Origin: Salpingoeca rosetta
Lineage: Eukaryota; Protista; Choanoflagellata
DNA length: 64,000 nt
Direction: 5' to 3'
Assembly (NCBI GenBank): GCA_033442325.1
Contig: JAWQFM010000003.1
Location: 160,724 to 224,723, forward strand
The position numbers were made by a program, and so were the translations under genes. The first letter of the stretch is position 1, and every line of letters starts with the position of its first letter. The notes under the pieces were generated by a model. It was not told the origin of the DNA, made no database searches, and saw only the letters and a program-made list of their open reading frames with translations. Positions 2,627 to 57,800 of this stretch are shown one piece after another.

Positions 2627-7594
<4,968 letters not shown>

Positions 7595-21800: not shown

Positions 21801-24167
21801 CTGTTCCGGAACCCGCGCGAGCTGTCCAAGGACCCCGTCGAGCACGCGCTGCTGTACGCGCAGGCGGTGCACAGCGTCGTGCACGTGGACGAGTACCCCG
21901 TGAACGAGAAGGTGGCGCTACAACTGGCGGGCCTGCAGTCGCAGGTGGTCTGGGGCAACGCGCAGGAAGGCGTGGTGTCCCGGTACGAGGACGTGGAGCA
22001 GTACCTGCCGCTGCGCATTCGGGTGTCGGATCCGCACGCCACCAAGGAGGACTGGACCAACAAGCTGTACAAGGCGCACATGGAGTACGGGCGCGGACTC
22101 GATGCTGCGCGCGCAAAGGTGCTGTACCTGACGGCGGTGCAGCACTACCCGCTGTACGGCGGCACGTTCTTCGATGTGCAGTACAAGGGGTTCTGGTCGT
22201 ACCCGGCGCGCCTGTTCCTCACCATCCATGCGGACGGCTTCAAGTTTGTGCAGCAGAAGACGAAGCAGGTGCTGGCGGAGTTTCCGTACTCTGCGCTGCG
22301 CAACGTGGAGGTGAACGCGGTTGAGGACACGATTACGCTCAACATGGACGAGAGCGCGGCGACGGAGGTGTCCAACTTCATGTTCTACACCCCGCGCAAG
22401 GAGGACATTGCCAACCTCATTGCGTCCTACTCGCCCGTTCACCGCAACTGGAAGGCGGTTGGCCAGGCCGCCGTCTCCCACCGCAAGATCACGGACAGCG
22501 ACAAGGCGCGCGCGTGGGAGCTGGTGCGCTCGCACCGCTCCTTGCTTGCAGGCACGGGGATGCTGCGCAAGGTACCCGAGGGCGGCCGCGGCCTGCTGGC
22601 CAACACGCTGCGGCGGCGCTCGTCAAAGACGGGTGCATCTGCGGCGTCGGCGTCGGCGTCGTCGTCTGCGGGCGACTCCGCTGGCAAGGGCAGCAAGGGC
22701 ATGCCGCAGGCGGAGATGGACAAGGCGTTCCCTGAGAAGTACTGGTCGTACACCAAGTCGAAGCTGCCGCAGCCGCTGACGGTGATGCCTGACGGGGAGC
22801 TGGAGGACATTGCGCTGGACATGTTCAGCTCGCTGCTGGTGTATGCGGGGCTCGCGTCGACGGGCGGGTACGCGGTTGAGGGCGACCGCGACCACATTGC
22901 GTTGGTGCAGACGGTGATTCAGCGCTGCCTTGACCGGGAGGAGCTGTGCAACGAGTTTTACCTGCAGCTCATCAAGCAGACGACGGAGCAGCCGGACCCC
23001 AACAGCCAGATCAACAGGCAAAACTGGTCCATGCTCGCGCTGCTGCTGGGCGTTGTTGTGCCGCGCCACAGGGAGCTGCTGCAGTACTTGTCTGCACACC
23101 TGCGGCGGTGCGGGCTGGACGGCTCAACGGAGGAGGGCAAGTACGCCCAGTTCTGCCAGCAGTGCCTGAACCGCACGATCATGAACAAGAACCGCAAGTA
23201 CCCGCCGTCGCGGCAGGAGATTGTGTGCGTGACGAAGATGCGGCCCATCCACGCGCGCTTCTACTTTATGGACGGCGAGTTCCGCGCGCTGATGTTTGAT
23301 GCCGCGGCGACGACGGCGGAGGTGGTGGCGATGATCAAGGAGCGCATTGGCCTGTCTGGCCGCGCGCCAGGGTTCTCGCTGTTTGAGGTGTTTGGCTCGC
23401 TCGAGCGCAACATGCTGCCGTGGGAGAAGGTGGCTGACGCGATTTTCAAGTGGGAGAAGTACGCGCGCAGCACCAACGCCACGCAGGAGCTGCGGCTCAC
23501 GTTCAAGAAGCGGCTGTTCACGGGCAAGCCCGAGATTCCGGCGCACGCGATTGAGTTTGACCTGCTGTTCTACCAGGCCGTGGATGACGTGCGCAGCGAC
23601 CGCTTCCCCGTGACGCCGGAGGAGGCGGCGTACCTTGCTGCCCTGCGCGCGCAAGTTGAGCTTGGCAACCGGGATGCGCTCGAGGTGACGAGCGGGGACC
23701 TGTACTCTGGCATTGTGCAGAAGTACCTGCCAAAGCACCTGCGCACGATTGTGCAGCCGGAGGACATTGCGGCGCACCACGCACGGCTGTCCAACAAGGC
23801 GGATGACGACTGCAACCGCGCGTTCCTGCGGTTTGTGCAGAGCTGGCCGCTGTATGGCTCGACGGTGTTTGAGGTGCTGCAGACTTACACGCAGGCGCTG
23901 CCCAAGAACCTGTGGCTTGCCATCAACGAGCACGGCTTCCACATTCTTCGGCGGCGGTCGAAGGAGCCGCTCATCTCGTATGGGTACAAGAGCATTGTCA
24001 GCTACAGCCCGTCCCTGCGCAACCTCATGATTGTCACGGGCTCGCTCACCCGCGGCACCAAGTTTGTGTTCACCACCAACCAGGCGTCGCAGATTGCGCA
24101 CCTGATCAAGGACTACACCTACCTCATTCTTCAGCGACGCAAGCCAGGAAAGGCCGCAGCAAAGTGA
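15830..24167 (+). CDS. Unconventional MyTH4-FERM myosin (motor, 3 IQ, charged helix, MyTH4-FERM x2, no SH3; myosin-22/VII-like), 9 exons, last exon 19260-24167
   Basis: Motor motifs [54 protein letters not shown] and [10 protein letters not shown] motifs LQRLLRG, IQAAVRG and IQAYVRG. Two MyTH4 domains ([30 protein letters not shown]), each followed by a FERM domain. All introns are GT-AG and in frame. Confidence 0.93.
19120..19255. repeat. Degenerate cacaatact-type tandem repeat at the 3' end of the last myosin intron
   Basis: Repeated 'caatactca(ca)' units run up to the CAG acceptor at 19259. Confidence 0.85.
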
Positions 24168-24917: not shown

Positions 24918-27900
24918 CTACTTGTTGGTCGCAACACGCGCGCGCTTGTGCGGTGGCTGATCTGCTGATGATCCCGCGTGGTCTCCATGCGCAACACCGC
25001 CACCACCGCTGCCGCCTGCTGGGTGCTGTGTATCGGTACCTGGCTTCTTCTTTGGTCGGCGAAGCGGGTGCGGCATGCCCTTGAGACCTGCTTTTGCGTT
25101 CACCACGGGCGGGCCTGGCGTGTGTGCGAGGTGTGGCGGCAGCCGTCGCAGCTTGCCCGCATCAGCAACGCGATATGTCTCTGGTTTGGGCAGCACCTTG
25201 TACATCTGGCCGTCGTACACCCGCAGTGCTGTGCTGGTGCTGCCAGCGTCGCTGCCTTCTGCTGGTTGCGACACGGGCTCGCCCAATGCCGGATCAAACG
25301 TGTATTTGATGGCGCGCTGGTTGTCGTACGCCTCCACCTCGCGCACCAGCACAACGTCCCTTGCTTGCAGCTGCATCTCCTCGCCTCGCTCCTCCTCGTC
25401 ATCCTCGATTGCGTTGAAGTTCTTCTCGCCCGTGCGCAGCGTGACGTAATCCCCCAGCGCCTCCGGCTCGTGGTCCTTGTCGTCAAGCGCGTGCTGCACG
25501 TAATTCATGTAAAAGTCCTGCGGCTCCGCGGCTGTGTCTTGAGGGTTGGCAACCCGGCTGCCCACGTGGATCGCTGCATCCACCAGGCCCCGCTTCATGC
25601 GCGCGTGCGCCGTTCGCATGTCGTCCTTGATTTGCTCCATCACGGATTCGTGCTGCTGCCCCCGCTGGCCCTCATGTTCCATCCCGTCCTCGCCCTGCCG
25701 CCGTCGCCGCTGGCCCTGTCCCTGTCGCTGCTGCTGCTTGTTGTTTGGCGTCGCGCGTGGCTTGGATCGGGCAGGCGTTTTCGGCTTTGCTCCTTTCTTG
25801 CCCTGTGTTTTGCCACTTGCAGTGGCCTTCCTTTTCCCATCGCTCTTTCTCCTTCTCGGGCTGCTCTTGCTGCTGTTGCTGCTGTTGCTGCTGTTGCGAC
25901 TGCTTGCTCTCTTGCTCGTGACTTTTGCTGCCTTCCCCGCTGGCTCACTACTATCACCGCCATCACCGCCATGAGTGTCGTGGCGGCGTTTCGCTGCAAG
26001 GCGTGCGCGCTGAGCACGCGTCATCACACCCGTGTGCAGATCAATGTCTGGCAGCTCGACAGGTTCCTCTTCCTCCTTCTTCACGGCGCGTGTGTTGCGC
26101 TGCCTTGGCTGCTTACGTCGCCCTTTCGCCCGCCGTGTGCTGGCCGCAGCCTTTTCCTCTTCGTCCCCTTCTGCTTGTTGCGGTTCTTCTTGTGCAAATT
26201 GCTCTTCGTCTTTCACCTCCCCCTTGGGCTGTGCTGTGCCACCCCTGCCACCACTACCACCATCACCACCATCACCACTACCACCACCATTGCCACCACC
26301 ATTGCTCGTGTCCACCTCGTCTTCCTCGCGGAGGGCGTCCACCTCTGCCAGCTCCGCCTGCACGCCGGATGATGCCGCTGTTGCCGTTGGCGATGTAATT
26401 GCCTCCACGGGGTGGTGCGCGGGTGTTGCTGCAAACGCCGTCTCCAGCTGCTCCCACGGCGCCTCTGATGCTGCTGGTGGGCTCTCCCACCCCTGCTCCT
26501 TCATCTCCCGCCGCCGGCGCTCGTGAATGGCTGCCAGCTCGTCGTGCTCGCGCTTCGCGACCTGCGCCGCCTTTCGCTCCAGGTGGGCAATGTACTCCAT
26601 GGACGTGCGGTACAGCGGTGACTCGCCACCAAACTGTGGCGAGATGTCGCCGTAGTTCGGGGACACGTCCCCATACCGCGGCGGTGACGCGCTGTCCGAG
26701 ACGGGCGTGCGCGGAATCACAGGCACGCCCTTCTCCATACGCACGCGGCGGCCGACGTTGCTGCCCACGGGCCGCTCAATCACCTTCCGCACGCGTTCAC
26801 CAGTCGCAGGCACTTCGTACTCGATGACGCGGAGCTCAGAGTCTGTGCCGCCATCATACGAGTATTGGCGACCGGCGGCATCGAGCAGCGCGTCCTGCCC
26901 GTCCTCGTTGAACAGCAGCCGCGTCGCCCAGCACACCACGGCCCCGCCCCGTGATGTGGCTGTCGTCGCTGCTGTTGCTGCAGGCGCAGGTGCAGGCGCA
27001 GGCGTCGTTGGTGCTGCCTTGTTCGCTGTGTCTTCTTGCTTGTCCGTCTTCTTCTTCTTCTTCTGCTGCTGCTGCTGCTGCTGTTCTGTTTGGGGTGTGG
27101 GGGCTGTATTTGCGGCAGTGGCTGGTGCCATGGCTGGTTCCGTGGCAGAGGCTTGCTTGGGTGCGCTGCTGGCATCCTGTGCCTGCGGCTGTTTGTGTTT
27201 TTGATGCTGGTGTGTTCTGGGTGTGGTGGAGGTAGGGGTGCGATGGGGCCTTGCCCTTGCAGCAGCAGGGGTCGTGGACGCTGACGCGGGCATGGAGATG
27301 CGCGCAACAACGGCCTGTGGCGCAGGCTCACGATAGTGGCACTGGGTTGGCGTGCACAGGTGCAGTGTCCCGGACCTGCGACAGATCCAGATGTTGTCCA
27401 TGAGCCGCGTGAAGCCGAACGAGCCGCACTCGTCCTTTGTGCACTCGTGGTCCTGTGTGGCCCAAGCCGGTGGTGTGGTGTCGCTGCCGTCGTCCGTCGT
27501 GCACCAGGACGACACGCCACTGCGAATGTTGAACCAGTACGGATAGTTTGGGCGCACGGGGTCGTCGGGCATGCTTTGCTGGATGACCCAGTTGCGGTGC
27601 ACGTCCTCCTTCCACTCGCGCTGGAGGCAGCGGGCCAGCAGGATGCACGCGTGTGCAGAGGTGTGGCATGCCGCCGTGTGCTGGTGCAGCCGCTTGTGGG
27701 AGAGGCACAGGGCAAGCGAGAGGCGCTGTGTCGGGTGAGGGAGTGAGATGATGTCGCACGTGGCGTCGCCGGGGCACTGCTCCTCGCCCATGCCCGGGAC
27801 ATCGAGCTGCACCTCGCCAGACTTGAACCCGTACCGCTTCTCCATGGCGGGAATGAGTTCCAGCAGCGGAAGGAACTCCTTGAACCTGATGGCAAAGTCC

Positions 27901-28478
27901 ATGGCAAGAAACTCCTGGTCGCCCGTATGCAGTGCACGCAGCTTGTCACTGCTGCGGCTGCTGCTGCTGGCGGTGGTGCCGTCGCCCTGCGTGTCGTAAA
28001 TGTGCCTGCGCACTGCATCTGAGAGCACGTTGTAGGCGTGGCTGATGCGTTGGAAGCGGCGGGCTGCCTCGTCCTTCTTGTCCTCTGGATTGCGGTCGGG
28101 GTGGTTCTTCAGGCAGAGCTTGTAGTAGGCCCTGCGGATTTTGGCCACGGAGGCCGTCTTGTCCACTTGCAGCACGTCGTACAAGTTCATTCGCTCAAAC
28201 GCTTCCACGCTCACATGCTGCTCCTCGTCCTTCCCTTCTTCTTCATCATCTTCACCATCATCATCGTCATCAACATCGTCCTTGTCAGCAGCGGCAGCAG
28301 ACCCAGTCGTGGTGGCGTCTTCGTGTTGTTCCTCATCCTCTTTCTGAGACTTGTCTTGTGTGCTTGCATCACGCACGTTGTGATCACTCGCTGCAGCATC
28401 TGTGCTCGTTGACGGCTGTTGGTGCTCTGGTGGTACCTCTTGTGGGCTACTGGAGTCATCTTGACCCGTGTCCATCAT
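24918..28478 (-). CDS. Single-exon 1186-aa J-domain (DnaJ type C) protein with a WW-like and Cys/His-rich region and a long disordered C-terminus
   Basis: J-domain NLYDVLQVDKTASVAKIRRAYYKLCLKNHPDRN…FQRISHAYNVLSDAVRRHIYD with intact HPD. WW-like segment WVIQQS…PYWFNIRSGVSSW. Uninterrupted ORF. Confidence 0.85.
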   Translation of the reverse strand: MMDTGQDDSSSPQEVPPEHQQPSTSTDAAASDHNVRDASTQDKSQKEDEEQHEDATTTGSAAAADKDDVDDDDDGEDDEEEGKDEEQHVSVEAFERMNLYDVLQVDKTASVAKIRRAYYKLCLKNHPDRNPEDKKDEAARRFQRISHAYNVLSDAVRRHIYDTQGDGTTASSSSRSSDKLRALHTGDQEFLAMDFAIRFKEFLPLLELIPAMEKRYGFKSGEVQLDVPGMGEEQCPGDATCDIISLPHPTQRLSLALCLSHKRLHQHTAACHTSAHACILLARCLQREWKEDVHRNWVIQQSMPDDPVRPNYPYWFNIRSGVSSWCTTDDGSDTTPPAWATQDHECTKDECGSFGFTRLMDNIWICRRSGTLHLCTPTQCHYREPAPQAVVARISMPASASTTPAAARARPHRTPTSTTPRTHQHQKHKQPQAQDASSAPKQASATEPAMAPATAANTAPTPQTEQQQQQQQKKKKKTDKQEDTANKAAPTTPAPAPAPAATAATTATSRGGAVVCWATRLLFNEDGQDALLDAAGRQYSYDGGTDSELRVIEYEVPATGERVRKVIERPVGSNVGRRVRMEKGVPVIPRTPVSDSASPPRYGDVSPNYGDISPQFGGESPLYRTSMEYIAHLERKAAQVAKREHDELAAIHERRRREMKEQGWESPPAASEAPWEQLETAFAATPAHHPVEAITSPTATAASSGVQAELAEVDALREEDEVDTSNGGGNGGGSGDGGDGGSGGRGGTAQPKGEVKDEEQFAQEEPQQAEGDEEEKAAASTRRAKGRRKQPRQRNTRAVKKEEEEPVELPDIDLHTGVMTRAQRARLAAKRRHDTHGGDGGDSSEPAGKAAKVTSKRASSRNSSNSSNSSKSSPRRRKSDGKRKATASGKTQGKKGAKPKTPARSKPRATPNNKQQQRQGQGQRRRRQGEDGMEHEGQRGQQHESVMEQIKDDMRTAHARMKRGLVDAAIHVGSRVANPQDTAAEPQDFYMNYVQHALDDKDHEPEALGDYVTLRTGEKNFNAIEDDEEERGEEMQLQARDVVLVREVEAYDNQRAIKYTFDPALGEPVSQPAEGSDAGSTSTALRVYDGQMYKVLPKPETYRVADAGKLRRLPPHLAHTPGPPVVNAKAGLKGMPHPLRRPKKKPGTDTQHPAGGSGGGGVAHGDHAGSSADQPPHKRARVATNK

Positions 28479-32847: not shown

Positions 32848-32987
32848 TGGTGGTGGTGGTGTGTGTGGTGGTGTGTNNNNNNNNNNNNNNNNNNNNNNNN
32901 NNNNNNNNNNNNNNNNNNNNNNNNNNNNNNNNNNNNNNNNNNNNNNNNNNNNNNNNNNNNNNNNNNNNNNNNNNNNGTGTAGTAGTG

Positions 32988-43853: not shown

Positions 43854-43868
43854 GTGTGTGTACTTGCT

Positions 43869-43947
<79 letters not shown>

Positions 43948-44047
43948 NNNNNNNNNNNNNNNNNNNNNNNNNNNNNNNNNNNNNNNNNNNNNNNNNNNNN
44001 NNNNNNNNNNNNNNNNNNNNNNNNNNNNNNNNNNNNNNNNNNNNNNN
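43948..44047. other. Assembly gap (100 N) between a (TG)n run and a (CA)n run
   Basis: Run of N. Confidence 1.
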
Positions 44048-44135
<88 letters not shown>

Positions 44136-44180
44136 ACACAAATGCCAACACAATTAATTGTGTCTTCTGTTGTACGTCAG

Positions 44181-45162
44181 GTTGTTTTGGTTGTTGCCAT
44201 TGCGGCTGTGGTTGGACTTGTGGTCATGGCTCGACTCGACCACCCGCTGCTGCGCCGTGTCCCCGCTGCCCACCGCATTGCAGCTTGGATTGACAGTCAG
44301 TTGCATCAAGCACTAGCCCGCCTTCCATTCAACATTCAACGGCAACACCCATTACAACAGCAGCAATCGCGGCAGGAGGCTGTGCAGTCGCGTCGGCGGT
44401 CTTCCGGCCGCAAGCGATCCTCTGTGCGCAACAAGACAGTTGCCGCGCAGGCCACCCAACCACATCAGCAAAACCAACAGCAGAGGCAGCAGCAGAGGCC
44501 GTCGCTAGCACCTGCTACTGCTGCAACCCCTGCCAACGCGTCCTCTGCGCAACAAACAACAACAGTACAGACGACAGCAGTGGAAGCAGAATTGAAAGTG
44601 CCCACAGCCAAGGCGCCGAGCGCTCGGAAGGCGGCGGCCTCTGTTGGCAACAAGAAGGACGAGTCCACACCACCAAAGGAGGTGCAACAGACCAAGAAGA
44701 CGCCAGACCAAGCAAGCGGCGAGGCGAAGCAGCACAAGAAGCGGAAGAAGAACAGGAAAGGCAAGCAGAAGGCATCCATGCCCAAGGCGGATGACGCCCC
44801 ACCCCGCGAGCCGCAGCAGCAGCAGCAGCAGCAGCAGCCAACCAACACTAATGCGAGGGCTTCTGCTCCGAACAAGAGCAAAGCTTCCTGCCTGCCGGGG
44901 AAGCGAGAGGAGTCAACAGCACCAACTACGGCCAATGCGACTGCAAAGGGTGTGTTGGCGCCGCGGCATATGAATGCCGCTGATGATGGCGGTGACCATG
45001 GCCAGCAAGGCGTGTCGAAGCAAGCGCCTCAGCAGCCGCAACAACCAAAGCAGCTGCAAGCATCGCAAAAGCCAAAGCTGCCAAAGCTGCCACAACAACC
45101 AAAGAAGCCAAAGCAGTCTCAACAAGTAGAGGAGCCCAAACAACCAATTGAGCCGCAGCAGC

Positions 45163-45256
<94 letters not shown>

Positions 45257-47108
45257 CGTGGGACAGAAGAGAGGGGGGAGGAAACGCAGGAACACCAAGT
45301 CAAAGCAGCAGCAGGAGGAGGAGGAACCACAACGGCCGAAAGAAGAGCCACAAATCGTACCGCCAGCTCGACCACAGACGGAGGATGGTACGACGAAGGG
45401 CAGCGAGGGACGGCGTTCGTACGCGAAACCAGTCGCTGTCAACACACCACCATCCCCGCCACCCACAGCCACAGCAACAGCGACGCCCACAGCGCCTACA
45501 CCGGCCACTACACCCACAGCAGTGACACCCACAACACCCACCAGAACAGCAGCGGCGCGCGGGAGCGGGAGTGGACGACGGAACAGGCGCAAGTCGAAGC
45601 AGCGTCAGCGCGCAGACAGCGAACAACACCGCAAAGAGTCCCACTCAGCGTCACCACCGCCCAGCACCGCCGAGACAGCGGCAGCGGCGCATGCCAGCAA
45701 CAATCACGGCAGTGATAGGACCGGTTCCGAGAGGCGTGGCGAAGACAGCGGGCAGCAGGACCCGGCAGGCCCAAGTCCAACGCGCCTCAACCCGAATGCC
45801 CCGGCTTTTCGGCCATCCCACCCGCTGACCACCGCTGACACGCCGCCAAGCGGCTCTCCAACGGCCTCTGCGTCGCCTTCTGCGCGCGCGTCTTCTGATG
45901 CTACGGCGGCGGACGCAACTCACCGGCGGCGACACCGGCCCCGACCGCCGGCACTGGCCATGGCGCCACCGCAGCCCGTGACTGCAGCGTATCCACAGCA
46001 ACAACAATCACAACCACAACAACAGTATCAGTACTACTACCAGCAGCAGCATGTGGTGTACCCCACGCCGTATGGCGTGCCTATGTCGCCTTACTCCCCA
46101 CATACCATGTGGCAGCAAGCGCTCCAGTCTGCCTATCCGCATGGCCCAGCAATGGCACCTGCGCTGACGCCACCGGCCACAACAGTTCCACTGTCCCCTT
46201 ACGCTTACTCGCTGCCGCAGACGCCCACCCACCCACAACAACTGTCGTTTATGCCGGTGCCCGGCACTGCTTCGCTGCTCCCGAACCCCGTGCCACCAGG
46301 ATATGGCGCGCTGCCTTCGCCTGGCGTTGGTGCTGTTGATGCCTATGGATACTACCAGTACCCGGTCTCGCTGGCGGCTTCGCCGTCACGGCGCCACAGC
46401 TCTGGTACGGACAGCCGCCCGCGGTCTTCGGCCTCTGCACGCCATCGCCACCACAAGCGCGGCTCGAGCAAGACCAGCAGCGACAGCGGCGAGCAGGACC
46501 GTGCAAACACCACCAGCACCACTGCAGCCTCCCCTGCGGCGACATCGACGGCCACGACCACGGCCACGACCACGGCGAACACGAGCAGCGTGGTGAGCAG
46601 TGCAGCAGACAGCACGCGGGGCAGCCCTGTGCGTGTGTCGACGCGGTCCCGGACACAGAGCGAGGGCTCGGCGCTGAGCAACACGGGCAAAGTGGTGGCT
46701 GCCAGGAGGAACGGCCGTACCGCGGACGCCAAGAGCAAGGCACCCAAGCAGCCCATGAAGAGTAAAGGGGGTGATGGTGATAATAGCAGTGGCAGTGCGT
46801 GTGGTGATGGCACTGGCCGCCGCGGTCAGGCAGGCGCCACTCAGGTACCGGCGACGCTGAAGGAGGAGAAGAGCGTGCGCGTGGTGGCATCGACGATGAA
46901 TGGGGATGGGCCCGACCCGAAACATGACTCTGCTGTCGACCCTCGGAAGAAAGGCGATGCCGTTGTTGCTGACGGTGGTCGTGGTGGTGTTGATGGCGGG
47001 ATGGATTGTGACGACGCTGAGCGTGATGACGAGCCCGCATGCAGCAACAACAACAACAACAACAACAACAACAACGCACCCGCTGTTGCGGTCATCAAAC
47101 AACAGTAG
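44181..47108 (+). CDS. Large terminal exon: TM helix followed by ~950 aa of disordered Gln/Pro/Ser-rich tail with polyQ and a PAM2-like motif
   Basis: CAG acceptor at 44180, then VVLVVAIAAVVGLVVMA (TM), polyQ and RLNPNAPAFRP. Open to the stop at 47108. Confidence 0.7.
45156..45254 (+). repeat. Coding (CAA)n trinucleotide repeat encoding polyglutamine (~33 Q)
   Basis: Almost pure CAA run in frame with the ORF. Confidence 0.95.
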
Positions 47109-47679
47109 CAGTAGTTGCAGCACTTTAACCGATGTGTGTGTGTGTGTGTGTGTGTGTGTTTCGTTGGGGGCGCCAAACGTTCAAACAACTTAGTCTTGCT
47201 TGTTGTTGCTTCTTGCGATTTCGTGATGCAATCTGTTGATTTTCGTGTGAAGATATTAGTAAACTCTCTGCACAACGCCAGCGGAAACGTGACCTTTTTG
47301 TTTGTTTGGATTGCTGCAGCAGTGTTTGCATTGATTGCTACAGCAGCCGCAGTGCCACGCCAAGCCAAGCTCTGTTCTTGCTTCGCCTCCCTGTTTCAGC
47401 ATCAATCAACTCTTTGTGATCTGCCCAGCATCAAGAAAGCAAGCAGTGCAGAAATCCAGCCCACAACTGACTGTCGCCCATTTCTCACCGCACCACACAG
47501 CATCCCGAGCACAGTCACAGACAGACAGATCGCAAGCAAGGCTTTCCGTCCTCATTGATCCATTGATCACACAAACAGAGACAAATACAGACACACAGAT
47601 ACACACAAGTACAGACACACAGGTACACACACACGCTCTCTCTCTCTCTCTCTCTCTTCGAGACTGACGTTCAAGCAAG

Positions 47680-49226
47680 ATGGTGTTCACACGCAAAGGC
47701 ACGGATACGGCGACCGGGCAGACCGCCAAGCGAGAGCACGCTGACGGAGATAAGGCCGCCAAGCGCAGCAAGGCCAAAGGTGGCATGGCCATGGCAAAGA
47801 AGGAGACCGCCAGCGCCACCACAACGAAGAAGGAGAAGCCGCACATGCCCTCGCAGCGCCAGATGAGCAAGAAAGGCTACGGCCCGGGCGAAACCATGTT
47901 TGGCATCCGCTTCACCCACCCAGACAAGGTCATGTTCCCCAAGGCCAAGCTGACCAAGGCCAACCTGGCCCAGTACTACCTGGACATTGGCAACTTCATC
48001 ATGCCGTACCTCAACGACCGCCCACTGACGATTGTGCGCGGCATCCGCGGCGCCACGGACGAGCGCCAGTTTGTGCAGCGCCACCCGCCTGCAGGCCTGC
48101 ACCCGACCATGAAGCACGGCAAGATCAAGCAGAAGGATGGCCGCACCCTGGAGTACATGTACGCGGAGGAGGCCATGGCGCTCGTCGCCGCCGTGCAGAT
48201 GGACACGGTCGAGTTTCACGCCTGGCAAGCCAAGTTCCAGTCCCCCAACCACCCAGGTATCGTGTTTCTGCTTGTGTGTGTGTGTGTGTGCGTTTATGTG
48301 TGTTTATGTGTGTCTATCTGTCTGTCTGTGTGTGTGTCTGTCTGTCTGTCTGTGTGTGTGTGTGTGTCTGTCTGTCTGTCTTGTGTGCGTGTCTGTCTGT
48401 ACGCATCCGAATTTACACGTCCACACATCCATTCATCCATTTCACATACCCATCCATCCACCCATACACGCATCCATTCACGCAAACACGCATGCACACA
48501 CACACACACACGCACTGCTTTCTCCACTCCTGCAGACCAACTTGTGTTTGATCTGGACCCTGGTGAGGGTGTGACGTTCTCCACACTGGTGGAGGTTGCC
48601 CGCGCCATGAGAAAGGTGTTGGAGGACGAATTCCACCTCAAGTCCTTCATCATGCTCACGGGCAGCGTTGGCCTCCACATTGTCTGCCCACTCCACCCAC
48701 CGGAGAAAACCTTTGACGTCACGCACGACTTTGCAAAGGGTGTCGCGTACTTCCTCGAGGTGGCAAAGCCGTCCATCGTCACAGCCAAGCCAGGCAAACC
48801 AAGCCGCATCGGTATGTCGCGTGTGTGTGCGCGTGCCTGCTTGTGGTGTGTGTGTGTGTGTCTGTGAGTGTGTGTGTGTGTCGGTGTCGGTGTCGGTGTC
48901 GGTGTGTCTGCGTGAGAGTGCGGCTAGCTGTGCAAGCGTATGAGACTCTTTGAGCTCACTCTCGCACTTCATCCGTCACTTGGTCCACCACCCACCACCT
49001 CACACAAACTTGCACGCATGCTCGCTTGTGTTCACGTGTTTGGCGCAAAGGCAAAGTGTTTATCGACTACATCCGGAACTCGTACAACCAGACGTCAATT
49101 GTGCCGTACTCAACACGTGCGCGTCCGGAGGCCCCTGTCGCCACACCGGTTGACTGGTCCGAGCTCGACTCAATCAAGGCGCCAAACCAGTTCACCACAA
49201 AGACGTAAGGGCCAAAGCGCGCGCGC

Positions 49227-49283
<57 letters not shown>

Positions 49284-49329
49284 CGTGTGTGTGTGTGTGT
49301 GTATCTGTGTGTGTGCGTGTGTGTGTGTG

Positions 49330-49378
<49 letters not shown>

Positions 49379-49710
49379 CTGTCTGTCTGTCTGTCTGGAC
49401 TTGGATTGATGTATGACCTTTTTTTTTATTATGATGAACGTTCCATGTTGGCCAGTGGCCCGTCATTGTATGTGCTTACATACATCCCCTTTGACTGCAA
49501 TTAACACCTGAACCACCGCGTCTCTGCCGTTGCTCTCATGTCCACCCTGCAACCACGGACAGTGTTCTGGAACGCGTGCGTTCCGCAAGCTTCAAGGACC
49601 CCTGGAAGGGCTTTGGTGCCGTGCACCAGCACATCCCACAAGACTGGCGGGACACCATGTCCAAGCTCTTGTCCAGTGCCCCCGGCTCGTCATCTTCTTC
49701 TGCTCACTGA
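47680..49710 (+). CDS. Stand-alone LigD-type primase-polymerase (bacterial NHEJ PolDom, AEP superfamily), 4 exons: 47680-48256, 48536-48811, 49051-49204, 49563-49710; 384 aa
   Basis: THPDKVMFP…TKANLAQYY…[13 protein letters not shown]…FVQRH…[11 protein letters not shown]…P|[10 protein letters not shown]…[12 protein letters not shown]…|[39 protein letters not shown]…|…DPWKGF. Exon lengths sum to 1155 nt, in frame, with no internal stops. Confidence 0.92.
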
Positions 49711-50165
49711 ACGCCCTTCATCAATCAATTCACCAACGCCATCTGCGCCAACATCACAGCCATAGACGACCATTGCTTCTTGTTTGCATGCATGTATTCA
49801 TTCCACTGCCGCACCCCCGTGTTATGCACGCCGCGCCCCACCGCTGTTGAACTGCCATGCTTCCTCGTTGTCGCTTGTGTTTGCCTTCCTTCGCCTGAGC
49901 CTGAACACATAAGTTGTGCATGCACACCACCCTCACACACACCCTTGCCTCGTCTGCACCTTCCTTGTCAATAGCAACCATCCTTCTCCATTTGTAGTCG
50001 CGCATACTTCAACCATAACAAACCAAAATACAACTGGAAAAACACATGTACTGGCAAGGAAGGCGTGGTCAAGAACGAAATCACATGATCAACGCAGAGA
50101 TCAGGAGCATCATGTGGCTCCTTAAACATACACGCGCGCACACACACACACACACAGAGAGTGTG

Positions 50166-50359
50166 TCAGGACACTGACGGGTATGTTGTGTGCTTGCGTC
50201 CAATGGCTTGCACGCGCTGTGACAGCTGGTCCAGCCGGTTCAATCGCACATCCATGGAACCCAACAGTTCATGCATGTCTGTAAACGGAGAGTATGCTGC
50301 AGCTGTCTTGCCTCCCTCTTGCTGCTGCTGCTGCTGTTGTTGTTGTGGTTGTTGTCCTC

Positions 50360-50392
<33 letters not shown>

Positions 50393-50659
50393 GTTGTTGG
50401 CGTTGCGGTTCTTGCTGCTGCTGTTGTTGTCGTTGTCGTTGTTGTTCTTGTTGGCGTTGTTGTTCTTGTTGGCGTTGCGGTTCTTGCTGTTGTTGTGATA
50501 GTTGTGGTCGTTGCTCTTCTCGCTGTTCCTGCTGCTGCTGCTGCTGCTGCTGTTGTTGTTGTTGTTGTGCGTCATCGTGGTGGGTGCGGAGGAGATGAGC
50601 ATACTGTGCTGTTGCAGGTGCTCTTGTCGACCTTTGTCCCCGCCGCTGCCACCGCCCTC

Positions 50660-50692
<33 letters not shown>

Positions 50693-51782
50693 CGCGGTGC
50701 CGTGCACTGTAAATCTCAGCGTCACGCAGAAGCTCTTCATTTGTTGGCGCGGCAACCGGCTGCACGCTCACAAACCCGCGCCCTCCGCCCGAATCCTGCG
50801 GCGGCACGGGAAACCCGTCACCGTGCGCTGCAAACGGGGGGAGCTGCACGACCACAGCGCTCTCAAGATCAATCTGAGCAGGCGGGTGCACCATCGCGTC
50901 CTCTCTGGGCCAGGTCTGAGTTTCAATCGTGCGCTGTGATTCTCCATCATGCAGCTGCAACAGCTGGGGTGTACCCGCACTCGCCTCAGCATCGCGGGCA
51001 GCCGCAACCTGCTGGGCCATGTTCAACGCCTGCGTTCGCGTGCTCGCCAATTCCTGCTCAACAGCGCGCATGCGCTCCACAAGCTCACCTGTGCGGTCTC
51101 TCCCAACTACAGGGACAGCACCATCAGCATCATCACCTCCTGTTTGTGTGCCAACAGCAAACCCGTCAATCCCGAGTGCATGCGCAATGTCCTGTCCAGT
51201 TTGCACCACCTGCTCCTGGCGCTGCGGTTCGCGTGTTTGTGTCTCAGCCTCAGCAGTTGATCTGCCCTCATGTGTCCCCAGGCCATCACTGACTGCTGCC
51301 GTACCAGGGTGGCGGTGGTGCTTGTGCCGTCTCTGCGCACGATGCGCACGCCAATCCTGATCGTTTCCTTCGCTCCCAGTGTCGCTGCTGTCCGTGCTGT
51401 TGTTGACATGGGCACGGTGTCCATGGCGCCCATGTGCACGAGCGCGGTAGATCCTGATGTCGTCGTCGTCGTCTTCGTCGCTATCACTAACGTGATCGTT
51501 GCACCTTCGACCGTGTCTGAGGTGTCGCTGAACAGCGGCTTGCACGGCATCACAACACGCTTGAACTGCATGCTGCGTGAGGTTTCCAACGCGCTCATAC
51601 AGCACAGATTGCATAGCTGCGTCACGCCGATCGCTAGCGGGGCTCCAATTCCGAATACCGTTCGCATCACGCGTGTGTGCGTCCGGCAGCTGCTGTTGCG
51701 ATTGGGGCCGCCGTCGTCGTCGCTGCTGCTCCCGTCTCATGGTTCGATTTGGATGCGTGACACCGAAAGGCGACGCTTGCGG

Positions 51783-51834
<52 letters not shown>

Positions 51835-54800
51835 GATTGTAGAGGGTCAGAACCAGCAGTGCTGCTTGTTGTGTCACCCAACGTACTCACGTCCAAAGCA
51901 AGTGTTGGGATGCCAACACCGGCAGTTTGTGGGCGACGACGAGGCGTCGGTGTCGGTGTTGCTGGAGAGGGCTGTTGCGAGGGCGCCTGTTGGTTTGAGA
52001 GTGCTGCAGGCAAGCGAAGTAACAGGGGGCCTGACTGCCCATGGTTGCACTTGATAGTCGTTCTTCCACCTTGCACTTGTGTGTCTGGTGGTGTCGACTG
52101 CTTCAACAGGCGTAGCAAAGGGGCAGCAGCTCCATCGCCCCCGAGTGTCTGCTCTTTCCGTGCTGCGTCGTTCTTTGCTGCTCGAAGCTTGGCTGGATCA
52201 CGCAACAGCGGCTGGCGCTGCTGCTGCTGCTGCTGCTGCCGTGCGTGTTGGTTTTGGTTCTCTTTGCCAGCCTCATCTGTGGTGGTCAGCCGCAGCAGAG
52301 GTGGTGGCATCGTGGCCACGTGTTTCTTCCTTGTTGCACTCGCGCTTGAAGTGTGCTGTTTCGTGTGACGGTCGTGCTGCTGCCTTCTTGGTGCAGTTCG
52401 CGTTGCGTCATGATCGTTTTGTTGTCGTCGTTGCCCTTTCTGCTGTTGACCTGGCCTTTTCTCACGGGTTGAGCCCGTTGGTGCTGCTTGTCTTTCTGCG
52501 TGCTGTGACTGTGCCGCTGCTTGTCTTTCTGCGTGCTGTGACTGTGCCTGTTCTTTCCCCAGCCTCGACCTCTTTCCTTTCTCGTGCTGAGAAGAATGAG
52601 TTGATGTCGTGTGTCGATGCTGGCCAACACACACGTGCTCATCCCCCTGGGTATCTCTGGCTTGTTGACGATGCAACACACCGTGGTCGGTGCGATCACG
52701 GTCCGTACCGTTTGCGCCGTCACCCCTTCCTCTTGTCACGTGTGTTGGAACACGAGAAATGCCCTTTTGATGCTTTCTCGGCGGTGTTCTCACCCACTCG
52801 TTCAACACCTTCACAGGCATCATCTCTCCGCTACTCACGTCCTCTGCTGCTTCGGTGCCCATCGCTTGCTCTCCAACATCGCCCACATCGCCCCTGTGCA
52901 TCGCGTCTGAAACATCGTCCTCCGCGTCGCATTCTAATGCATCGTTCGATTTCAACTTGCCGTCGCTTGAGCCGCCTCGCCCTTCCCCGCCTGTATTGTT
53001 CGCTGTGTCATGTTCCACCTTGCTCTCGTGTCCACGACCAAAGTCCTCAAGTTCGCTCGCACTCTCTTCGGCAGCATCCTCGCTCGTATTGCAACCGCGC
53101 TGATGCGGAGAGAGCCACTGCGTTTGTTGGAGGCGCTGTGAAGGCGACACAAGATGGCCACTGCCTTCTCGCTTCAGCGTCCCCCGCAACACGGGCAGTC
53201 GGATGGTGGCAAGTGCGTCGTCTGAAGCTGCACTGCGGTTCAGCGGCGCTGTTGCTGTTTGTAAAGATGATGGCATGTTGCCATGCTCACCACTCCAAGC
53301 GTGTTTCGCCACACCCAGAACACCCCCACCATCTGCCCTTGCCCCTGCAACCGCCTCCGCCGTGACTTCCTCCTCCTCCTCCTCCTCCTTGTCTTCACCA
53401 TCATCATCATCGTCATCATCGTCGCTGCTGTCCATCCTTGGCACCGGGACGTGATGGTGGTGATGGCGGTGATGATGCTGAGAGTGAGCGTGCGAGAAAC
53501 CATGTCCATCGTCTTCATCATAAGCGTAATCATCGTCGTCATTCACATCATTGACATGCGGCACACGCGGATGCGTTGCATCATCGCGTGCTTGCGCTTG
53601 ATGCGCCATGAGGTCGGAGCTGCTCCTATTGCCGTCGTTGGACTGATCGAAGGTCACGTCGCCGCTGTCTGCATCTGATGGTGGCACGATGACCAGGCCG
53701 GGAAAACTCTGCAGAAGTTGCTGCCCTTGCTGCTGCTGTGCGTGCTGCCCTTGCAATTGCTGCTGCCGCTGCTGCTGCTGTTGTATGTTGTCGTGCAAAG
53801 ATGTGAGCCCGCCGCCACGCAGTCTGTACGGGATTGGCTGTTCCACGGCAGCAGGGTAGTGATGCTGGCGCTGCTTGTGCATGTGCTGGCGCGGCGTTGA
53901 AGCCACGCCCAGCATGATTGGTGAGGACTCCGTTGACGCAGCATCCTGCAGTACACCCAAGCCTGGTGTGCGCGGCCCTCTTGCCCCGGAGAAGGCTGTT
54001 GGGGTGCACAGCCCCTCGCCGTCCCTGCTGGTTACATCGCGTGTTTGCAGCCCTCCAAATTTGCCGGACTCGCGTGTCGCCATGCTCGTTGCCTGTCCCC
54101 CGGACACTGACCAAGACAGGCGCCGCTGAGGGCTGGTGGCGAGCGGTGATGGAGCACAGCCACGGGTTCGCCTTCGGCCATCAGGTGCCAGCAGCACATC
54201 TGGTGCCTCGAAGGAAAGCGCACATGCGCCTTCTTCGCTGTACTGCGTGGCAGACGCTCGGGACGTACACCCCATCGTTGCTGTCACATCTGCCGCTGCC
54301 GTCATTTCAAGGAGCCACGGGTTGCTGACCATGCCCGCGTTTGAGGGCGACAGCGACAGCAGCAGGGGTGCAGAGCCTGTCATCCTGCCGCTCGCACCAC
54401 CAGGCACACGCACATCTGCGATGCTCAGGACATTGTCAGCTGCTCGCGGTGATCGACAGAGTGCGGGGCGCGGCTGCAGTGGCAGCTGGCGTGACGGCGT
54501 GGAGGAGATGGTGGAGTCTGACGTGCGTGACACAACTGATTCGGAGGAAGACAATAGTGAAGTTGCTGCTACATGCTGCTGTTGCTGTGGCTGCTGTTGC
54601 TGTGGCTGTTGTTGGTGTTGCTGCTGTGGCTGCTGTTGTTGTTGCTGTGGCTGTTGTGGCTGCTGTTGTTGTTGAGTAGTTTGTATGCTGGTGGCCGGGC
54701 TGTGTTGATGCTTGTTCCTGCTGTTGCTGCGGTGCCGGTGACGCCTCACATGTCGATTGCACTGGCGATACCATTCCCTGTCGAGCTGTTGCGAAAAACT

Positions 54801-57800
54801 TGGCGGCGTGAGCCCAAGAGCCTCCATCGCCCTCGTGGTGGCAAGAAGGAGGCTTGATGCTTGTGAAGTGGATGGATATGACGAACGCTGGCTTCGGAGC
54901 AACGCTTGGCCCGACACAGCGGATGAGACATTGTGCTGTTGAGAATGATGCACTGCACGCTGCTGTTGGCGCGATCTCGCAGCTTCGTTTAGCACACATG
55001 CCACATCACCAACGGCCAGTGGTGCCAGGCGCTGTGTGGCCGCGCCAGAGTCTTCCTTTGTTGAGTCAGGTGTTGCAAGGCCGGCCCTCAACGCCAGTAA
55101 TCGCAGCATGCACTGTTCGTGGTGGTCGCGCTCACCAACTGTAACGTCGAACCTCGTCTCCACATGCGGCAGTCCATCAATGGACGCAGATGCCAAGTAA
55201 ATGTGCCGCACGCACCGCTGTGCAAACTCTGCAAACGCTGCACAGGCAAAGGGGCCAGCGTGCCGCGCATCTCGGTCGCACCCAAGCTTGACATCGCGCC
55301 CAAGATCCGCCAGCGCTGCCAGCTTTGTTCGCAGTCTGCAAAGCACACAAAATCACGCATGCGGTGCGTTGCATGCGTGCGTTGTGTATGTGTGTGTGTG
55401 CGCGCGTTGCGTGTGTGCGTGTGTGTATGTGTGTGTGTTGCGTGTGTGCGTTGTGTGTGTGTGTGTGTGTGGTTGCGTGTTTGTGTGTGTGTGTTTGTGT
55501 GTGGTTGCGTGTTTGTGTGTGTTACATGTGCATATGTGTGTGTGTGTGTGTGTGTGTAGAACACGACAGGACACAACATAGGTGAGCTTTCAAGGGCACG
55601 GTGAATCCGCAGGCGTTGCGACAGCAGGCAAGAGCACAAAGCAAAAACAAGGACAGCAGAATGGACCTTGCGGAGTCGATGACATTTGCAGCCTGAACCT
55701 CCTGGGCAATGCTGGCTCGCTTGTACTTGTCTGGAATGCCTTCAATTGCCTTCACCGAGAATTCTTGCACATTGTACGCGCCAAACGCCAACCCTTGTTA
55801 TGGGGTGTGACCGTGTGTCACCGTGTCGACATGTGTGCATGTGTGTGTTTGTCGATGGGTCCAATAGACGTGAGCATCACGTGAGCATATATTTGTAGTG
55901 ACATGTGTGTGTGTTGTGCCTGCGCGCAGGCGCAGGTTCACGGCTATGGGTCATTGTGACTGTTGCCTCACAGCAGAAGTGTTAAGCGTTTTCTGTCAGC
56001 AGAGCCACTTACCACACTGAGCAAATAGCACAATCGTGTGACCGCTTTCCACTGTGGCAGGTTGGTGCCACAGCAGCGAAAACTTGTCGCGAATGTGCAG
56101 GACCCAACACAGGCGAACAACCCTTGATGATGTGTGTAAACGAAATTCGAGGCCGTGAGTTGGATGCAACACGTATGATATGCACAAGGGGTGCTGTGAA
56201 TGTGACTACGAGAGCGAGTGCAGCGCAATGACTACTGTGTAATATCAAGCCATGCACACACAAACATACACGCAAGCACACGCACACACACACGCGCGTG
56301 CACGCATTGCTTTCGTGTTTAAGAAAGTTGTCCCTGAGACGCACCTCTGAATCACGACTGGGTAGTGCTGCAATGGCGGTTCGGCATGACGGTCGATATT
56401 TGTAAGTGCTCCCGTCGCGTTGACAATGGCCGCACATGCGCGGACTGCACGTCCAGCAATCGTCCGCAGCACAGCCTCTGCACGCACACAAGGCGGGTGG
56501 ACAGTTGGACCATGCGAGAGTGTTCGTGCGTGAATGTGAACGAGCGAATGCATAAGTGTGTGTGTGGGGGGGGGAGTGTGTGTGTGGCCGTGTGTGTGTA
56601 TGTGGATATGTGTATGTGTATATATATATATATACATGTATGTACGTGTGTACGTGTGTGTATATGTGTGTGTATATGTGTGTGTATGTGTGTGTATGTG
56701 TGTATGTGTGTATGTATACATATATATATGTGTGTGTGTGTAACGTTGGACAAAACGAGGGAGTGTGTCAAAAAAAAATGACACCGTTGCCCGCCTCAAG
56801 CAAGCCTCTTCGTTCATGTGTCTCTCGGGTGAATCGCACACCTGTTGAGCAAGTGGACGCATCAAACTCTTGCGTATCACACAGAAACCCAAACTCGGCG
56901 TCATCGCTCTCTGCTGGAATGTCGCGCTGGTGCTCGACCACTGGCGTTATTGAGCCCACGGCCTCGCCAAGCGTCCGCAGGTGGTTCTACGCGTGCGTGT
57001 GGGAAGCGGAGGGTGAGAGATGGTGCTTGAAGCGCGTGAGGGCGTGTGCATGCGGTGAGCGTCTGGCCAGTGTGAACTTTGGCTGTGCCTGCTCCTTGGA
57101 CACACGTTCAACTCGCAGGGCAAGTGAAACAGACCACTCAAACTCGACCAACCTCGAGCAGTGCCAGGACCACATCCACATCTCCCGCGATGACAGCAGC
57201 TCGCGTGACGCGGCTTTCCATCCATGGCTGAGGCGCCGCAACACATTACCGACAGCCGTGCATGACACACGCACACAACCATGCATGGCACATACACACA
57301 CGCACACGAAACACACACGAACACAAACGCACAAACGCACACACACATGCACAATACACAAACACATACACGCACAAAAACATACGGTTTAGTGTTGCTG
57401 AAAACCCACTGCACGAGCAACAAAGAACCAGCCATGACATGCCACGCAAAGCCATTCACCTCACACTGTTCCATCCACATTCGATAGAAATGAGAGCACA
57501 TGGCGCGCGCTGCTTGGATGCGACGTACCGAGAAGTCGGCGTGCCAGCAAGCGCGCAGCAAGATGGGACGAGCGAGAGCAAGAGCGTTTGGAGTGACATC
57601 GCGGGCAACAGCAATGGTGTACGCGAGCAACCAATCTCCGCGCGTCTGCAGCAACTCAACGGCCCTGTCCGTCTCATCTGTGCAGATGATAGGCACAAGA
57701 AGAAGGGATGCGTTCGGAGAAGTGTGAGGGTGTTCCGGACGAAACTCAGGGATGGGTGGCTGTGATGGTGGAAACGAAGGGGGGGGGGTAGGCCAACCGC

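Follow-up and report, generated by a model that had tools for sequence, protein, structure and literature searches.

The 64,000-nucleotide stretch of the choanoflagellate Salpingoeca rosetta genome analysed here (hereafter the window; positions 160,724 to 224,723 of contig JAWQFM010000003.1, assembly GCA_033442325.1) contains PTSG_02198, a gene of four exons and three introns at window positions 47680-49710 on the plus strand, whose 384-residue product is a full-length, stand-alone archaeo-eukaryotic primase-polymerase (AEP) of the LigD type, the polymerase domain (PolDom) of bacterial non-homologous end joining (NHEJ). The joined exons (47680-48256, 48536-48811, 49051-49204 and 49563-49710) give 1155 nt, that is, 384 codons followed by TGA, and the introns, of 279, 239 and 358 nt, all begin with GT, end with AG and lie in phases 1, 1 and 2. 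In a protein search the product was 100% identical to NCBI PTSG_02198, a 384-residue 'hypothetical protein' of S. rosetta, for which the UniRef entry gives the name DNA ligase D polymerase domain-containing protein. The gene is present as a single copy in the 55.4 Mb, 68-contig assembly and sits on contig 3, which is 2.24 Mb long. An initial annotation made from the letters of the window had placed a 384-residue gene with three GT-AG introns at these coordinates and had described host-type microsatellites within the introns; sequence reading and spliced RNA show the coordinates to be correct to the base, and (GT)n, (TGTG)n or (GTGTCG)n repeats were found in all three introns.

The transcript begins with a 5′ untranslated region (UTR) that covers at least 47425..47679 (+), since the RNA contig X10 starts at 47425 and stranded reads are still present at 47400, and that carries (ACAGACAC)n-like and (CT)11 repeats. 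Exon 1 (47680..48256, +; codons 1-192 and one further nucleotide) specifies a basic, disordered extension at the N terminus (residues 1 to ~72) and the first third of the polymerase (POL) domain, including the residues H80, K83 and K93 of the 5′-phosphate pocket. It is followed by the microsatellite-rich intron 1 (48257..48535, +; 279 nt, GT..AG, phase 1), which lacks an in-frame stop, so that a 395-residue open reading frame reads through it at 47680-48867. Exon 2 (48536..48811, +) contains motif I, with D198 and D200, and motif II, T234-G-S-V-G-L-H240; intron 2 (48812..49050, +; 239 nt, GT..AG, phase 1) carries (TG)n and (GTGTCG)n repeats. Motif III, with D290 in FIDYIRN, and the triphosphate-binding PYSTRAR segment, with S305 and R307, are encoded by exon 3 (49051..49204, +). 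Intron 3 (49205..49562, +; 358 nt, GTAAG..CAG, phase 2) holds a (GT)84 array, and the coding part of exon 4 (49563..49710, +) specifies the C-terminal domain helix with its DPW motif, a Ser-rich tail and the TGA stop. The 3′ UTR occupies 49711..50000 (+) and, judging by the length of RNA contig X4, extends to ~50156.

PTSG_02198 is a genuine, expressed and correctly spliced nuclear gene. Assembled RNA contigs from three studies (X4, X10 and X13) each align as four collinear pieces without mismatches and with contiguous coordinates in the RNA record. The pieces start at 47425, 47516 or 47666 and end at 48253, and continue at 48533-48810, 49050-49204 and 49563-50000; their offset of 1-3 nt from the modelled junctions reflects bases that can be aligned on either side of a splice joint. 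Raw stranded RNA reads (X21) covered the exons at depths of ~4 to 54 and fell to zero in introns 1 and 2, and all of their first mates mapped to the minus strand, which is what a plus-strand mRNA gives in the usual stranded library. In three reads at 49563, the loose end is made up of the last 12 bases of exon 3. In the unique 3′ part of intron 3 (window 49401-49562) the RNA depth was about one quarter of the exon depth, which suggests that this intron is partly retained in RNA; on retention, translation would end at residue 336 (TAA at 49206-49208) and the last domain helix would be lost.

The identity of the product was established from profile searches and from its predicted fold. Exons 1, 2 and 3 match the Pfam family LigD_Prim-Pol at profile positions 1-100, 102-189 and 192-240, and the exon joins dovetail with the profile. 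The full protein scored 269.9 bits against PF21686 LigD_Prim-Pol (cut-off 27.4), covering profile positions 1-254 of 254, and 251.9 bits against NCBIfam TIGR02778 ligD_pol (cut-off 214.7), a threshold passed by four of the five choanoflagellate proteins described below, the Monosiga protein failing it at 187 bits. The best full-length NCBIfam models were TIGR02776 and PRK05972, for LigD proteins in which a phosphoesterase (PE) and a ligase (LIG) domain precede POL, and they were matched only in the C-terminal POL part; no other Pfam domain scored above cut-off in any of the five choanoflagellate proteins. By sequence, the solved structures that matched best were the Pseudomonas aeruginosa LigD POL (3e-47), the Methanocella NHEJ polymerase (5e-46) and the Mycobacterium tuberculosis PolDom (2e-39), together with Mycobacterium smegmatis Prim-PolC. 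An AlphaFold2 model computed from a 64-row alignment had a mean predicted local distance difference test score (pLDDT) of 87.1, with values of at least 95 over approximately residues 75-375 and disorder over residues 1-70. Foldseek placed this model closest to 2FAO, with a template modelling (TM) score by target of 0.93 and a root mean square deviation (rmsd) of 1.8 Å, and its top 16 matches were all LigD POL, NHEJ polymerase or Prim-PolC structures (TM by target 0.81-0.93).

An identity as the eukaryotic primase subunit PriS or as PrimPol was rejected. PF01896 stayed below its cut-off at 17-23 bits, with 17.5 bits for exon 2 by itself, and was not reported by the Pfam search for the full-length protein, which also detected no UL52-type zinc finger domain; the identity is excluded because the human and yeast Pri1 and PrimPol folds gave TM scores of only 0.31-0.45 with rmsd values of 8-15 Å. 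The bacterial LigD PolDom ancestry and the stand-alone architecture claimed in the initial annotation thus hold, on the profile scores, the structure matches, the fold and the tree, and the checks that it had proposed gave a spliced transcript with exact junctions, no grouping with PriS or PrimPol (TM ~0.35 against 0.93) and orthologues in four other choanoflagellates.

Functional residues were mapped by HMMER alignment to 2IRU, whose chain numbering equals the native numbering plus 3. Asp227 of the M. tuberculosis PolDom is taken here to be the catalytic aspartate of motif III. In the same enzyme Asp137 and Asp139 bind metal, Ser172, His178 and Arg244 contact the nucleotide phosphates, His111 senses the ribose 2′-OH and confers the preference for ribonucleotides, Lys66 stacks on the base and contributes to fidelity, and Asn13, Lys16 and Lys26 form the pocket for the 5′-phosphate (PMC8656161). 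The S. rosetta residues D198, D200 and D290 align with the catalytic triad D137/D139/D227 of M. tuberculosis and with the corresponding P. aeruginosa residues, at columns without any variation (100% invariant) across 75 bacterial rows. The counterparts of S172, H178 and R244 are T234, H240 and R307, that of H111 is H180, and K66 is replaced by R134. The pocket residues N13, K16 and K26 correspond to H80, K83 and K93; Pseudomonas LigD likewise has a histidine in the first of these positions, and both lysines are invariant in the five choanoflagellates. The motifs FDLDP, GLH, FIDYIRN, PYSTR and THPDK...TK, which the initial annotation had singled out, were all found. Further, 60 alignment columns were at least 85% conserved in the 75 bacterial POL domains, and S. 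rosetta retains 54 of them (median 57 and minimum 43 for the bacterial rows), among them all those with 100% invariance in bacteria. Across the choanoflagellates, the DxD...D triad is complete in four of the five species, and H240, R283 and R307 are kept in all five. Judged from the alignment, then, the metal-, nucleotide-, ribose- and 5′-phosphate-binding residues are kept or conservatively replaced, the motif II lysine being the exception.

The N-terminal extension of ~70 residues, which is absent from stand-alone bacterial PolDoms, is disordered, lysine-rich and hydrophilic. Clusters of the form K(K/R)x(K/R), read from the sequences, occur in this extension in four of the five species, and the extension is likely to act as a nuclear targeting signal. 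Its first ten residues (window 47680-47709) follow a pattern, M-V-x-T-R-x-G-T-D-T, that Salpingoeca, Microstomoeca and Barroeca have in common and that Monosiga shows more loosely; the pattern matched no known motif and heads an otherwise variable extension.

The history of the gene was approached through its relatives. An exhaustive HMMER search of 1.84 billion representative sequences returned 10,082 relatives, the nearest of which were the proteins of Microstomoeca roanoka (56% identity), Choanoeca flexa (48%) and Monosiga brevicollis (45%); an orthologue from Barroeca monosierra was recovered as a cluster member of a word-search match. Beyond the choanoflagellates the relatives form a continuum of bacterial LigD proteins with 33-42% identity, and the profile search score drops from 551 bits (Monosiga) to 306 bits (Sorangium LigD) with nothing in between. 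Neither a non-choanoflagellate eukaryote nor a virus appeared among the best 120 and the best 150 matches of two very large searches. In a maximum-likelihood tree of 80 rows, the five choanoflagellates formed one clade, with a support of 99 in the Shimodaira-Hasegawa-like approximate likelihood ratio test (SH-aLRT) and a stem branch of 1.03, and the two subgroups of this clade, (Choanoeca, Monosiga) and (Salpingoeca, Microstomoeca, Barroeca), agree with the species tree. It lies outside all 72 Gram-negative-type LigD POL rows, with moderate support (88). In the phylogeny that the initial annotation had proposed for finding a donor clade, a single choanoflagellate clade was recovered, and no donor phylum could be named from the 80-row tree or from the 20 named bacterial loci of the related-locus search, Sorangium, Planctomycetota, Nitrospirota and Sphingomonadales being roughly equidistant at 35-42% identity.

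Introns were compared in the two orthologues for which genomic DNA was used, those of Barroeca and Monosiga, and all three S. rosetta introns are shared with both loci in position and phase (1, 1, 2); the annotated Monosiga model has three further introns. The shared introns imply that the gene was already intron-bearing and nuclear in the common ancestor of these lineages. Together, the tree, the matches and the introns point to a single ancient acquisition from bacteria, before the split of the sampled craspedid clades. All five species from which orthologues were recovered are craspedids, and the label 'Urchoanoflagellate' given to the gene by Matriano et al., which extends to the loricates, is not confirmed by them.

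The comparison also touched the annotation of the Monosiga gene itself. The model XP_001744089.1 seems to be mis-spliced at an acceptor 33 nt upstream of the AG at 7281-7282 (L037:7252-7284). The acceptor chosen adds 11 residues found in no orthologue, and use of the downstream AG would restore the junction P|D-K-V-L-F seen in the other species. In addition, an insert of 28 residues after F-T-H-P-N-K (L037:6176-6736) looks like an intron that was not called.

In bacteria, the POL domain works with partners, and these were sought by six-frame searches of the whole S. rosetta assembly. The LigD phosphoesterase (PF13298 LigD_N) and bacterial Ku (TIGR02772 Ku_bact) gave no match, no LigC-type ligase was present, and the LigD ligase model TIGR02779 gave only cross-matches of at most 42 bits (cut-off 228) inside eukaryote-type ligase loci. 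The absence of a ligase, phosphoesterase or Ku gene first noticed in the window thus extends, for the bacterial types, to the entire genome. The searches found the eukaryotic counterparts instead. Two loci encode a Ku beta-barrel, one of them adjoining a eukaryotic Ku_C arm, and neither matches the bacterial Ku model. Four loci encode ATP-dependent ligases, three with the eukaryotic N-terminal DNA-binding domain and a fourth that best matches dnl1. Two X-family polymerase (PolX) loci with palm and thumb matches lie on contigs C7 and C27. By these searches, the polymerase module is all that S. rosetta retains of the bacterial Ku-LigD kit, within a complete eukaryotic repair background. The presence of two PolX loci led to the rejection of the idea that the PolDom substitutes for missing X-family polymerases, and the gene is therefore an addition and not a replacement.

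The fourth ligase locus (C9:1677327-1677842) was considered separately. It shows no detectable DNA_ligase_A_N match, and an in-frame stop between its two adenylation-domain matches is probably due to an intron. A hidden bacterial-type ligase at this position was rejected, as the eukaryotic/archaeal model dnl1 scored 70.7 bits and NHEJ_ligase_lig 22 bits.

Taken together, the reading considered best, with a probability of about 60%, is that a single ancient transfer gave these choanoflagellates a nuclear, manganese-dependent, ribonucleotide-preferring PolDom that fills gaps beside the host repair machinery. Gap filling of the bacterial PolDom kind is the most likely activity predicted from the retained residues and the intact fold. 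In such a mechanism, the recessed 5′-phosphate at a short gap or at annealed break ends would dock in the H80/K83/K93 pocket, and the two-metal site formed by D198, D200 and D290 would add a few templated nucleotides in a manganese-dependent reaction, with H180 providing the preference for ribonucleotides. The resulting 3′ end could be sealed by a host ligase, and the enzyme would act beside host Ku70/80, X-family polymerases and ligases without replacing any of them. Eukaryotic ligase IV, like LigD, prefers a nick with a 3′-ribonucleotide (PMC8656161), so that the product of this polymerase would suit host ligation.

Several observations weigh against a conserved gap-filling polymerase. The motif II lysine (equivalent to M. 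tuberculosis K175 and 96% Lys in bacteria) is Val237 in S. rosetta, at a site given as the region of window 48546-48548, and is Ser in Barroeca and Asp in Monosiga. The first catalytic aspartate, kept in the other four species, is Asn in Monosiga (D198N, in F-N-L-D-P; codon AAC at L037:7297-7299, CH991546.1), which could mean that this lineage has truly lost catalysis or could stem from a mistake in the assembly. In C. flexa, the ribose-sensing histidine is Phe (H180F). Some lineages of the clade may therefore have relaxed their catalysis or their choice of sugar. To them must be added the stem branch of 1.03, whose length would also fit a change of function, the lack of the Ku recruiter and of the LIG and PE co-workers on which the bacterial enzyme usually relies, and the existence of two host PolX loci.

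Most of the same observations are the basis of the strongest rival explanation, according to which the protein has been re-purposed, either as a non-catalytic or weakly catalytic factor that binds or synapses DNA ends or gaps, or as a polymerase or primase that operates elsewhere, in damage tolerance, repriming or mobile elements. In its favour, the motif II lysine has been lost in three of the five species, all the bacterial partners are absent, and the long stem branch is accompanied by the replacement of near-invariant bacterial positions: Pro122, present in 97% of bacterial sequences, is Ile in all five choanoflagellates, W252F is likewise common to all five, and C121G and G236S or A are each found in four. 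PolDoms are also able to synapse ends through their loops and phosphate pocket (PMC8656161). Against it stand the triad, full in four of the five species, the invariance of H240, R283 and R307, the conservation score of S. rosetta, which falls within the bacterial range, and the pocket specific for repair substrates, which is unchanged at K83 and K93. On balance, re-purposing is a tentative alternative, to which we would give about one chance in four. Somewhat less probable still is a truly chimeric pathway, in which the new N-terminal extension would wire the PolDom to eukaryotic Ku70/80 and to ligase IV, or to a ligase of the III/XRCC1 type. If it existed, such a pathway would provide extra filling of break ends when deoxynucleotides are scarce in mostly haploid cells, an ability kept since before the craspedid radiation.

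The remaining alternatives concern the place where the enzyme works and the route by which the gene arrived. A role as a mitochondrial instead of a nuclear repair polymerase would agree with the frequent organellar targeting of genes of bacterial origin and with an N-terminal add-on of 70 residues that stand-alone bacterial PolDoms lack; the extension, however, is hydrophilic, contains Asp and Glu from position 9 on and has no predicted helix, and in four of the five species it bears the K(K/R)x(K/R) clusters typical of nuclear signals, which makes an organellar role improbable. Slightly more doubtful is the passage of the gene through a virus or another eukaryote, such as an alga. The position of the choanoflagellate clade outside the 72 sampled Gram-negative-type rows and the donor 'Bacteria/Algae' proposed by Yue et al. 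would fit such a detour, but choanoflagellates were the only eukaryotes, and viruses were lacking, among the best 120 and 150 matches, and the fall from 551 to 306 bits leads straight to bacterial LigD proteins. Finally, the ideas that the gene is a bacterial contaminant, a chimeric product of the assembly or a pseudogene, suggested by the fact that the best non-choanoflagellate matches are all bacterial (35-42% identity), can be dismissed as the initial annotation had anticipated, given the three spliceosomal introns removed in RNA, the 2.24 Mb contig on which the gene lies between eukaryotic genes, its single copy and intact frame, its conserved sites, and its orthologues in five species with introns shared by two others.

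The other genes identified in the window are ordinary eukaryotic ones, as had been stated for the flanks of the gene. They comprise a NUC153-domain protein (13948-15135, +), a MyTH4-FERM myosin similar to myosin VII/X/XV with two MyTH4 and two FERM parts (19158-24164, +), and a large DnaJ-domain protein (24921-28478, -). The immediate flanks of PTSG_02198 consist of long, low-complexity, poly-Q-rich open reading frames at 43854-47108 (+, 1084 residues) and 50166-55346 (-, 1726 residues), and runs of N mark assembly gaps at 32877-32976 and 43948-44047.

Comparison with characterised systems helps to place the S. rosetta protein. Both by sequence (3e-47) and by fold, its best match among solved structures is the POL domain of P. 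aeruginosa LigD (2FAO), an enzyme of the PE-LIG-POL type, with which it shares the catalytic triad, the motif II His, the Arg pair and the phosphate pocket, including the His at the N13 position. It differs from Pseudomonas LigD in having neither a LIG nor a PE domain, in being encoded by a nuclear gene with three spliceosomal introns, in its disordered basic N-terminal extension of ~70 residues, and in the replacement of the motif II Lys and of the second stacking Phe by Val. With the stand-alone prokaryotic NHEJ polymerases, such as that of Methanocella paludicola (5DMU; 5e-46, TM 0.89) and mycobacterial PolD1 and PolD2, it shares a single-domain architecture. In prokaryotes, cognate Ku, ligase and PE are encoded beside these enzymes or cooperate with them (PMC4538821), whereas the S. 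rosetta genome holds no cognate partner. Mycobacterial Prim-PolC, the polymerase of LigC-associated short-gap excision repair (5OP0/6SA0), has the same fold (TM 0.81-0.82) and a gap-filling logic directed by the 5′-phosphate; its sequence score is lower, 127 bits as opposed to 165 for Pseudomonas LigD POL, and S. rosetta lacks a LigC-type ligase. The eukaryotic PriS/Prim1 and PrimPol share the superfamily and the three catalytic motifs, but the S. rosetta protein stays below the PF01896 cut-off and its fold is different (TM ~0.35). In contrast to the bacterial and archaeal Ku-LigD system, then, what S. rosetta possesses comes without a cognate Ku, LigD or LigC ligase or PE, and is not such a system.

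The gene and its transfer from bacteria are already known from the supplementary tables of two surveys of horizontal gene transfer (HGT), which agree with the horizontal acquisition proposed in the initial annotation. Matriano, Alegado and Conaco (Sci Rep 2021, PMC7971027) list it in Table S1 as EGD81480/PTSG_02198, with a coding sequence of 1155, 384 residues, 3 introns and a GC content at third codon positions (GC3) of 0.784. Their entry gives as best match a 'DNA ligase D' of Sphingomonas wittichii (39.9%), an Alien Index of 126.97 ('FOREIGN'), no metazoan match, the Monosiga counterpart XP_001744089.1 and the last common ancestor (LCA) 'Urchoanoflagellate'; the corresponding tree, Fig. S1-88, bears the name 'Uncharacterized protein'. 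Yue et al. (BMC Genomics 2013, PMC4046809) record the Monosiga 'DNA ligase D' (GI 167519499 / XP_001744089.1) with the donor Bacteria/Algae and mark it as intron-bearing, as a gene addition and as having a Salpingoeca homologue. The gene is not mentioned in the main text of either paper, and neither survey noted the polymerase-only module, the retained catalytic residues or the absence of the bacterial partners. A review of AEPs treats those of NHEJ as bacterial and archaeal (PMC4538821), and a literature search found no dedicated study of the PTSG_02198 protein. What the present analysis adds is the verification of the gene, its anatomy and a testable mechanism.

In conclusion, PTSG_02198 represents one of the few genetically testable cases of a bacterial NHEJ module inside a eukaryotic repair network, and this in a tractable organism. 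If the enzyme is active, bacterial Ku, ligase and phosphoesterase are not indispensable to a LigD polymerase, and a member of the AEP family would join the X-family polymerases at eukaryotic breaks or gaps.

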